Of a stretch of 64,000 nucleotides of DNA, positions 55,893 through 56,639 are shown piece by piece. The number at the start of each line of letters is the position of its first letter. Position 1 is the stretch's first letter. The stretch is from the IMG/VR virus record IMGVR_UViG_3300007352_000001, positions 177,427 through 241,426 of that record; one strand, 5' to 3'. Under the pieces are notes generated by a model that saw only the letters and a program-made list of their open reading frames with translations, ran no database searches and was not told the DNA's origin. Position numbers and translations under genes: made by a program.

Positions 55893-55966
55893 GCCCCGAT
55901 GGCTCAGTCTGGTAGAGCGGCTGACTTTGGATCAGCAGGTCGCTGGTTCAAATCCAGCTCGGGGTG
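55893..55966 (+). tRNA. tRNA-Gln(UUG)
   Basis: cloverleaf; anticodon arm GCTGA-CTTTGGA-TCAGC; T loop TTCAAAT; G1-U72, G73; no encoded CCA. Confidence 0.85.
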
Positions 55967-55969
55967 CTT

Positions 55970-56042
55970 GGGTCGATAGCTCAAATGGGAGAGCGCCTGT
56001 TTTGCAAGCAGGGGGTTTGGGGTTCAAGTCCCCGTCGATCCA
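55970..56042 (+). tRNA. tRNA-Ala(UGC)
   Basis: CCTGT-TTTGCAA-GCAGG; G3-U70 and A73 Ala identity elements. Confidence 0.9.
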
Positions 56043-56050
56043 CTTCTCGA

Positions 56051-56123
56051 TCCCCGGTAGCTCAGATGGAAGAGCGCTCGCCTACGAAGCGACAGGTCGC
56101 TGGTTCGACTCCAGTCCGGGGAA
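56051..56123 (+). tRNA. tRNA-Arg(ACG)
   Basis: TCGC-CTACGAA-GCGA; TCCCCGG/CCGGGGA acceptor; T loop TTCGACT. Confidence 0.85.
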
Positions 56124-56138
56124 CTGCACACACGATGG

Positions 56139-56213
56139 TCCCCGGTAGCTCAGCCTGGCTAGAGCATGCGCCCGATAAGCGCAGAGTCGTCGGTTCAAAT
56201 CCGACTCGGGGAA
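56139..56213 (+). tRNA. tRNA-Ile(GAU), atypical C33
   Basis: TGCGC-CCGATAA-GCGCA; T loop TTCAAAT. Confidence 0.8.
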
Positions 56214-56217
56214 CTGA

Positions 56218-56304
56218 TGCGGAGTACCCGAGTTGGTAGCAGGGAGCGGCCTGTTAAGCCGTTGGGCGTAAGCCCCGTCGTAGGTTCGAGTCCTACCTCC
56301 GCAG
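56218..56304 (+). tRNA. tRNA-Asn(GUU) with long variable arm
   Basis: TGCGGAG/CTCCGCA acceptor, G73; GCGGC-CTGTTAA-GCCGT; V-arm GGGC-GTAA-GCCC; T loop TTCGAGT. Confidence 0.8.
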
Positions 56305-56639
56305 CCTTTTCTCCTCCTCTGCTTTTCGTAGCTCCTGCACGCGCTTCCACAGGTGCGGGAAGCGCTGCTGTAGGTCAGGTGAGCGTTCGAGGTCCTGGAT
56401 GGCCTCGCGCACGAGGGGCGCGAGCCAGTCGCGGTCTTCAGTCATCATCATCTCCTGAGACCAGTATCTCACGAAGGTTTCCACCGCCGACCCACCAGGC
56501 TGTGGGCACGGTTACGGCGGCGTCTCTGTGCAAGAGGCGCCGCTAGATCTCTCGCTCGTCCACCAGGTGTGGAAGGAGCATCCGGTGGCGTCGTCCGAGC
56601 TATGCTTGGCGGCGCTTCCAGTCAACGTCTGGAGGACGT

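Follow-up and report, generated by a model that had tools for sequence, protein, structure and literature searches.

A long-arm (class II) tRNA-Asn(GUU) shared by phiKZ and other phages is probably charged with asparagine

The window analyzed here, a stretch of 64,000 nucleotides, is the final 64 kb of a virus record that is 241,426 bp long, has a G+C content of 65%, bears direct terminal repeats, and is rated as complete. Its matches in PHROG, to a DNA polymerase and to proteins of the tail and the virion, show that it is a large tailed phage. Megablast of 20 kb found no close cultured relative, and the phage DNA polymerase is at most 27% identical to that of any cultured phage. The window contains an array of five tRNA genes on the plus strand (55893-56306), in the order tRNA-Gln(UUG) (55893-55966), tRNA-Ala(UGC) (55970-56042), tRNA-Arg(ACG) (56051-56123), tRNA-Ile(GAU) (56139-56213), and tRNA-Asn(GUU). 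The four upstream genes were identified by both ARAGORN and Rfam (57.6-69.8 bits), and the tRNA-Asn gene is the final member, with the end of the Ile gene 4 nt upstream. No promoter or terminator was found in a scan around the array, and the neighboring genes are mostly orphans. The Arg and Ile genes have one common acceptor stem (UCCCCGG / CCGGGGA, with U1-A72), and the Gln gene has a G1-U72 wobble where U1-A72 is usual. A small minus-strand open reading frame (56293-56484; 63 aa from a GTG, about 52 aa from an ATG run) converges on the array and overlaps the final 12 nt of the tRNA-Asn gene.

The tRNA-Asn gene (56218-56304, plus strand, tRNA positions 1-73) is 87 nt long and folds into a cloverleaf with a 7-bp acceptor stem and a 5-bp T stem (7/5). 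ARAGORN reports it as tRNA-Asn(gtt) at 56218-56306, with two 3′ C residues counted in, and the Rfam tRNA model RF00005 matches 56218-56304 over its full length with 53.2 bits, above the gathering score of 29 bits. The acceptor stem (56218-56224 with 56297-56303) opens with U1-A72 (U at 56218, A at 56303) and G2-C71, the discriminator is G73 (56304), and U8 and A9 are present. The D arm (56227-56244) is of the class II type, with a 3-bp stem of CCC (56227-56229) and GGG (56242-56244) and a 12-nt loop, GAGUUGGUAGCA. The anticodon arm (56246-56262) consists of GCGGC / CUGUUAA / GCCGU, in which 56246-56250 pair with 56258-56262 around a 7-nt loop, and both the sequence and ARAGORN place GUU at 56253-56255. 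It is followed by a variable region of 17 nt (56263-56279), seen in the sequence, the fold, and the covariation, which contains one U, a 4-bp stem of GGGC and GCCC capped by GUAA, a GNRA tetraloop, and four unpaired bases (CGUC) before the T arm. The T arm (GUAGG / UUCGAGU / CCUAC, 56280-56296) is supported by the sequence, Rfam, and covariation. The variable region is longer than 10 nt and forms a base-paired arm, as in class II tRNAs, and the 4-5-nt variable loop and 4-bp D stem of a class I body are both absent. Such a long arm is reserved for Leu, Ser, Sec, and bacterial Tyr tRNAs (PMC7609411, PMC9976931). The minimum-energy fold is the same five-arm cloverleaf (-37 kcal/mol, z = -2.6). 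G73 is followed by CC (56305-56306) and then T, so the CCA end is incompletely encoded and needs completing after transcription. These results, together with the match to a family model (R1) described below, confirm that 56218-56304 is a real tRNA gene. An earlier note, made from the letters of this DNA alone, had described the same anatomy (87 nt, GUU, U1-A72, G73, and a GGGC-GUAA-GCCC arm), and direct reading, ARAGORN, Rfam, and the fold all agree with it.

Similar tRNAs are found in many other phages. A structural pattern (CTGTTAA, 20-30 bases, GGTTCRANTCC) matched at least 120 viral stretches, about 100 of 120 of which were called by ARAGORN as tRNAs of 80-94 nt with GUU. In contigs of prokaryote genomes the same pattern gave mainly chance matches and about a dozen real bacterial long-arm GUU tRNAs, most of them in dense tRNA arrays (10-36 genes per 8 kb). 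A broad set of 118 distinct long-arm GUU tRNAs among the matches listed, chosen by CUGUUAA and the T loop only, contains G73 in 104 members, U1-A72 with G73 in 76, and G1-C72 with G73 in 28. Searching with a pattern that combines this D arm with the anticodon loop gave 58 viral contigs, of which many exceed 200 kb. From these contigs and cultured phages come the 66 copies (48 distinct) detected by covariance model R1, which was trained on 37 sequences, the window copy among them. The copies score 79.9-108.8 bits, and other tRNAs in 600 kb of phage DNA score at most 64.5 bits; the window copy, at 99.5 bits, lies inside the family range. Because the window sequence is in the training set, independent support comes from BLAST against cultured phages, which returned the annotated tRNA-Asn of phiKZ and of 24 other Pseudomonas phage records at ~85% identity over 84 nt, with the D arm and the extra arm covered. 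BLAST of the window tRNA against E. coli genomes gave no match at E = 10. All 66 copies have G73 and U1-A72, and all have GUU, for which the search pattern had required CTGTTAA. The check proposed earlier, a search for class II Asn tRNAs in other phages, thus finds a whole family with phiKZ as a member. Compared by sequence, the long-arm tRNA-Asn is an old, diversified family spread across many unrelated phage contigs. The phiKZ-type genes have stood in GenBank as plain tRNA-Asn since phiKZ was sequenced; we found no description of a class II shape of tRNA-Asn in open-access papers or bioRxiv, reviews on tRNA identity and on non-canonical tRNAs included, and the subscription literature may differ.

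Some family members occur in other arrangements. A phiKZ-type long-arm tRNA-Asn and a normal short-loop tRNA-Asn are found together at nine loci (L254, L258, L260, L286, L293, L295, L031, L115, and L124), and two tandem long-arm copies are found in three contigs (L255, L266, and L291). In phiKZ (L127:1742-2224) and Psa21 (L128:1152-1718), the gene directly downstream of the long-arm tRNA-Asn encodes an HNH endonuclease; the window has no such gene in this position.

Covariation was computed on the 48 distinct family sequences. Standard pairs make up 98.7% of the pair cells, 19 of the 23 pairs change on both sides, and every helix covaries, including the D stem through pairs 10-25 and 11-24. 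The covariation score is 0.745; shuffles reach 0.174, and sliding the partners gives 0.05-0.12. In the extra arm, compensatory changes (G-C, A-U, U-A, and C-G) occur at each of the three modelled pairs, indicating that the arm is kept as a helix by selection. In the acceptor stem, U1-A72 is found in all 48 distinct relatives and pairs 2 to 7 all vary, with C-G in 25 and G-C in 22 at pair 2-71. Pair 31-39 is A-U in 38, C-G, as in the window, in 7, and G-C in 3. G73 is invariant in the family alignment (A2). We note that the search pattern left the acceptor stem, the discriminator, and the extra arm unconstrained; the D loop and the anticodon loop were fixed by it, so their constancy is circular and proves nothing. 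Covariation shows a folded, selected RNA, and the purpose of the arm is outside its reach. A sequencing error or a chance fold is ruled out by the 66 homologues, all with GUU, and by the covariation; the conserved GUU also answers the misread GTA that the earlier note had named as a refutation.

The phage genome carries 24 tRNA genes, and 56218-56304 is its sole GUU tRNA; a separate tRNA-Tyr(GUA) is encoded as well. Searches of the phage genome with PF00152 (Asp/Asn/Lys-type synthetases), PF00587 (Ser/Thr/Pro/His-type), and PF01743 (the CCA-adding enzyme) gave no match, so host enzymes must act on the tRNA-Asn. AAC is used at 27 per 1000 codons (2.7%). The Asn in the polymerase motif QNYPIQ, which is common to the best solved homologue and which we take to align with a conserved Asn of E. 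coli Pol I, is encoded by an ordinary Asn codon, indicating that the Asn codon is not reassigned. Low-level mistranslation at Asn codons may be compatible with the sequence. The polymerase itself (genome 144355-147687, L005:4355-7687) is a family A enzyme of 1110 aa, whose N-terminal region (~residues 49-211) matches family 4 uracil-DNA glycosylases in a PDB search. Two other tRNA calls in the genome are unusual. On the minus strand at genome 110444-110517 (L003:10444-10517), ARAGORN reports a tRNA with an 8-nt anticodon loop and a four-base 'anticodon' CUGG; it adjoins a similar tRNA-Arg(CCU) and could be a frameshift-type tRNA or a damaged copy. The other, also on the minus strand at genome 133107-133182 (L004:13107-13182), is a 76-nt short-loop 'tRNA-Ser(UGA)' of 51% G+C with C for U at position 33 and two unpaired positions ending the acceptor stem, and its assignment as a Ser tRNA is doubtful.

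The identity elements of the tRNA were compared with those known for bacterial synthetases. Asn identity consists of the three anticodon bases and G73, and bacterial GatCAB requires U1-A72 (PMC9976931, PMC2330236, PMC2811023). The window tRNA has all of them (G34, U35, U36, G73, and U1-A72), in agreement with the earlier note, which had named GUU, G73, and U1-A72 as an Asn/GatCAB set (PMC9976931, PMC2330236). Tyr and Leu identity need A73, and G73 is an antideterminant against LeuRS and TyrRS (PMC9976931). The window tRNA has G73, U36, and U1-A72 in place of the A73, GUA, and G1-C72 of bacterial tRNA-Tyr, and its G73 also replaces the A73 of tRNA-Leu. Ser identity is formed by the long arm, its orientation, and G73, with G1-C72 and G2-C71 conserved in bacterial tRNA-Ser and C2-G71 acting as an antideterminant against SerRS (PMC9976931). 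The window tRNA departs from tRNA-Ser by U1-A72 and by a 4-bp arm with four unpaired 3′ bases, and from allo-tRNAs, which have 8/4 or 9/3 stems, by its 7-bp acceptor and 5-bp T stem. In a profile test with ~1,600 phage tRNAs, the isotypes that its acceptor, discriminator, anticodon stem, and T arm fit are Asn and Gln; against Tyr, Leu, and Ser the acceptor scores below zero. These comparisons show that the family keeps exactly the Asn/GatCAB set, without the Ser or Tyr sets, and that the body is Tyr-like in shape and Asn-like at every position known to be read by the synthetases or GatCAB. U1-A72 is also present in the Arg and Ile genes of the array and is thus not Asn-specific within this phage alone.

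The most probable reading, to which we give a probability of about 0.72, is that 56218-56304 encodes a functional class II phage tRNA that is charged with Asn by the host and reads AAC and AAU as asparagine. The tRNA would be transcribed as the last member of the five-tRNA array and excised by host RNase P and 3′ processing enzymes, and, as only CC is encoded, the host CCA-adding enzyme would finish its 3′ end. AsnRS or an AspRS of the non-discriminating kind (ND-AspRS) would charge it via G34, U35, U36, and G73, and U1-A72 would serve GatCAB in hosts making Asn-tRNA indirectly. G73 would keep TyrRS and LeuRS off, and SerRS should not take the tRNA because the arm geometry is of the tRNA-Tyr type. 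Decoding of AAC and AAU as asparagine would then take place on a five-arm body instead of a four-arm one. This reading draws on the gene and its fold, the family and its covariation, the invariant identity positions, the lack of phage synthetases of these classes, and the normal Asn codons; expression, Asn charging, and any reason for the arm are inferences.

The indirect route to Asn-tRNA is relevant to both sides of this reading. P. aeruginosa, the host of phiKZ, makes Asn-tRNA via ND-AspRS and GatCAB only (PMC2330236), and this pathway fits the invariant U1-A72. GatCAB uses its tail domain to bind the D loop, where additional bases lead to rejection, and this domain is close to the variable loop (PMC2330236, PMC2811023). 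It is in these parts that the window tRNA departs from an ordinary tRNA-Asn, and GatCAB may therefore fail to accept it. In addition, class IIb synthetases approach the tRNA from the variable-loop side, and a clash with the extra arm is therefore conceivable.

We considered whether translation might not be the main role, the RNA acting instead as a decoy or inhibitor that soaks up a host nuclease or modification enzyme directed at tRNA-Asn. The PARIS nuclease AriB attacks tRNA-Asn as a secondary target, and overexpressed viral tRNAs have been suggested as possible competitors (PMC12409363). Long-arm and normal tRNA-Asn genes standing side by side, as in L254, L258, L260, L031, L115, and L124, would also suit a decoy. 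We nevertheless regard this explanation as unlikely, as the gene is the sole tRNA-Asn both in this phage and in the phiKZ stretch examined, and a pure decoy would have no use for the full aminoacylation set and the intact acceptor and T arm that the family conserves.

Charging with serine is quite unlikely. SerRS, which ignores the anticodon, would in this case insert Ser where Asn codons stand, deliberately blurring the proteome of the phage or the host. G73 and the long arm do belong to Ser identity (PMC9976931, PMC7609411), the window copy, like the phiKZ copy, also has G2-C71, which counts against Asn charging, and natural Ser-type tRNAs with non-Ser anticodons exist in the form of allo-tRNAs (PMC5389517). 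The family nevertheless lacks the hallmarks of tRNA-Ser, namely G1-C72, a fixed G2-C71, and a long arm with ~1 unpaired 3′ base. Its U1-A72 is invariant where G1-C72 is near-universal in bacterial tRNA-Ser, pair 2-71 is the antideterminant C-G in about half of the members (PMC9976931), and the arm has 3-4 bp and four unpaired 3′ bases versus 4-7 bp and ~1 in Ser. An entire Asn set is conserved, which a Ser tRNA would not need, and AAC amounts to 2.7% of codons. The suggestion in the earlier note of a mischarged tRNA that recodes Asn codons is unlikely for the same reasons, together with the missing A73 and the normal Asn codon in QNYPIQ.

It is very unlikely that, in indirect-pathway hosts, ND-AspRS aspartylates the tRNA and GatCAB then rejects it, leaving Asp at Asn codons or the enzymes sequestered. 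In its favor, the D loop is inspected by GatCAB, which is also placed close to the variable loop, extra D-loop bases are antideterminants (PMC2330236, PMC2811023), and in the window tRNA the D loop measures 12 nt and the variable region 17 nt. Against it, U1-A72, the positive GatCAB determinant, is the sole acceptor pair that never varies in the 48 sequences, which is hard to explain without the use of GatCAB. Asp-tRNA-Asn is also a poor ligand of EF-Tu. Finally, a decaying or neutral tRNA-Tyr copy with a GUA to GUU mutation, or a GTT assembly error, would account for the Tyr-like D stem and arm geometry with a one-base change, and is refuted, as far as sequence can tell, by GUU, G73, and U1-A72 in all 66 copies versus A73 and G1-C72 in tRNA-Tyr, by compensatory changes that keep all five helices, and by the separate tRNA-Tyr(GUA) of the phage.

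The preferred reading, a tRNA-Asn on a class II body, leads to the origin of that body. The D arm had been called Tyr-like in the earlier note, and E. coli tRNA-Tyr (tyrV) indeed has the same CCC/GGG D stem, GAG at positions 13-15, and A26. In bacterial tRNA-Tyr the arm likewise begins with one base and a 3-4-bp stem and ends in 3-4 unpaired 3′ bases; this tRNA differs from that of the window by having A73, G1-C72, and GUA instead of G73, U1-A72, and GUU. The E. coli tRNA-Asn gene asnU is alike in U1-A72, G73, CUGUUAA, a near-identical anticodon stem, and a similar T arm, and in the phiKZ copy the anticodon arm agrees with that of asnU at 17 of 17 positions. The D stem is 4 bp and the variable loop 5 nt long in E. 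coli tRNA-Asn, whereas the window tRNA combines a D stem of 3 bp and a D loop of 12 nt with the 17-nt region. Among phage tRNAs, the arm of long-arm Asn has 3-4 bp, 3-4 unpaired 3′ bases, and GNRA loops in 56%; that of Tyr has 3-4 bp, 3 unpaired 3′ bases, and GNRA loops in 7%; that of Leu has 2-5 bp and 1-2 unpaired 3′ bases; and that of Ser (142 tRNAs, with G1-C72 in 85% and G2-C71 in 93%) has 4-7 bp and ~1 unpaired 3′ base. D-arm alignment scores against the phage Tyr, Leu, Ser, and Asn pools gave no discrimination. After other Asn tRNAs, model R1 matches a long-arm Lys best, and Tyr, Ser, Gln, Pro, and Leu follow at similar scores. The scaffold of the family may be chimeric. Of the proposal that a tRNA-Tyr was remodelled into Asn, the Tyr-like D stem and arm geometry stand; a local or recent event does not, given an old, diversified family with covarying stems whose anticodon arm, acceptor, and T arm are Asn-like.

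Why the arm is kept can be approached through the nucleases that cut tRNAs. In E. coli tRNA-Asn, the cut made by AriB falls between positions 40 and 41, beside a U36-A-A-U39 motif, and T5 tRNAs escape it by point changes at this motif and the anticodon stem-loop (PMC12409363). The nuclease-resistant T5 tRNA-Lys, Thr, and Asn (PMC12409363, PMC10264068) resemble the tRNA studied here in being phage copies of nuclease-cut tRNAs, and differ in that their escape relies on these point changes and not on an added arm. T5 itself has a normal short-loop tRNA-Asn (L415:6953-7030; by alignment), and only its relatives carry the arm, so the PARIS data have no direct bearing on the long-arm copies. The arm leaves the core just above the strand cut by AriB, and position 39 is G in the window copy and 7 of the 48 relatives and mostly U elsewhere; both are a speculative lead on nuclease escape. 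Our guess is that the arm may protect sterically from host defense nucleases directed at tRNAs, much as the earlier note had proposed resistance to host anticodon nucleases, or offer a handle that tells phage from host tRNA. Equally simply, it may be a tolerated legacy of the founding scaffold. A wider adaptive role, which we hold to be doubtful, is that a GNRA-capped arm has been grafted onto four-armed tRNAs, where it evades nucleases or marks the tRNA as the phage's own. In this reading the graft would be found most often on Asn and also on Lys, Thr, initiator Met, His, Trp, and others from the same arrays, each tRNA keeping its own identity marks. Such phage copies would still be charged and used, yet they would no longer fit PARIS-like enzymes, whose cut lies on the 3′ side of the anticodon stem right beneath the exit of the arm. 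If true, the arm would be a general structural route of anti-defense beside point mutations of the anticodon loop.

Conservation of a long-arm tRNA-Asn in many phages, among them the model phage phiKZ and members of the BASEL collection that infect E. coli, matters in several ways. If it is charged with Asn, AsnRS, ND-AspRS, and GatCAB tolerate a class II body, which bears on how the tRNA core is read, and the tRNA would be a natural scaffold for tRNA engineering. If the arm blocks tRNA-cleaving immunity, a structural mode is added to the contest between phage and host over tRNAs.

The closest known system is the tRNA-Asn of phiKZ (PHIKZ_t02, NC_004629 269557-269645) and its relatives in OMKO1, PA1C, Psa21, and vB_PF_Y1-MI. 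These tRNAs and the window copy have in common U1-A72, G73, the CCC/GGG D stem, the D loop GAG(U)UGG(U/C)AGCAG, CUGUUAA, and a short GNRA-capped variable hairpin followed by four unpaired bases. The window copy differs by a 4-bp instead of a 3-bp arm stem, GUAA instead of GAAA, and C31-G39 instead of A31-U39; its CCA is incompletely encoded, and its phage is without a close cultured relative.

A second design is found in T5-like Epseptimavirus phages (such as TrudiGerster and SP01) and in Proteus phage PM135, with examples at L414:301-383 (Escherichia phage TrudiGerster), L010:908-992 (PM135), and L050:97-179. It is like the window tRNA in GUU, G73, and a long variable region, which here has 13-15 nt with a 3-4-bp stem and a GAAA cap. 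It is unlike it in G1-C72 and a normal 4-bp D stem, and it forms a separate family that R1 does not find at family level. At least 90% identity to the Epseptimavirus type is seen in 238 cultured records, from phages of E. coli, Salmonella, and Klebsiella and annotated as tRNA-Asn, and among the matches listed the arm is spanned in one piece. The hosts of the Epseptimavirus and Proteus phages have AsnRS. A third design, with G1-C72 and a Ser-like D arm, is known from metagenomes only, bringing long-arm tRNA-Asn to at least three designs.

The frequency of the long arm was estimated from a scan anchored on the anticodon arm only, CGGACTGTTAATCCG, which gave 119 stretches; nine re-hit loci from the searches aimed at long arms and 110 were new. 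Among the matches listed, these 110 new stretches contain 101 tRNA(GUU) genes, three of them with a long arm, and the long-arm share among the matches listed is imprecise, roughly 3-11%. The long-arm tRNA(GUU) genes sit in tRNA-rich loci. ARAGORN also reports long-arm Lys, Thr, initiator Met, Ile, Cys, His, Trp, Gln, Glu, and Pro tRNAs in the same arrays (loci include L115, L124, L258, L157, L022, L023, L105, L015, L014, and L065). These isotypes keep their own marks, such as A73 in Lys, the C1 x A72 mismatch in fMet, and G-1 in His, and many have a common module in which a single base precedes a 3-4-bp stem with a GNRA loop and 3-4 unpaired bases follow.

The allo-tRNAs (PMC5389517) are another known group that combines a long variable arm and G73 with an anticodon foreign to Leu, Ser, and Tyr. 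They have 8/4 or 9/3 stems and the identity elements of Ser or Ala, whereas the window tRNA has a 7/5 body, U1-A72, a short arm of the Tyr type, and an identity set that matches its anticodon.
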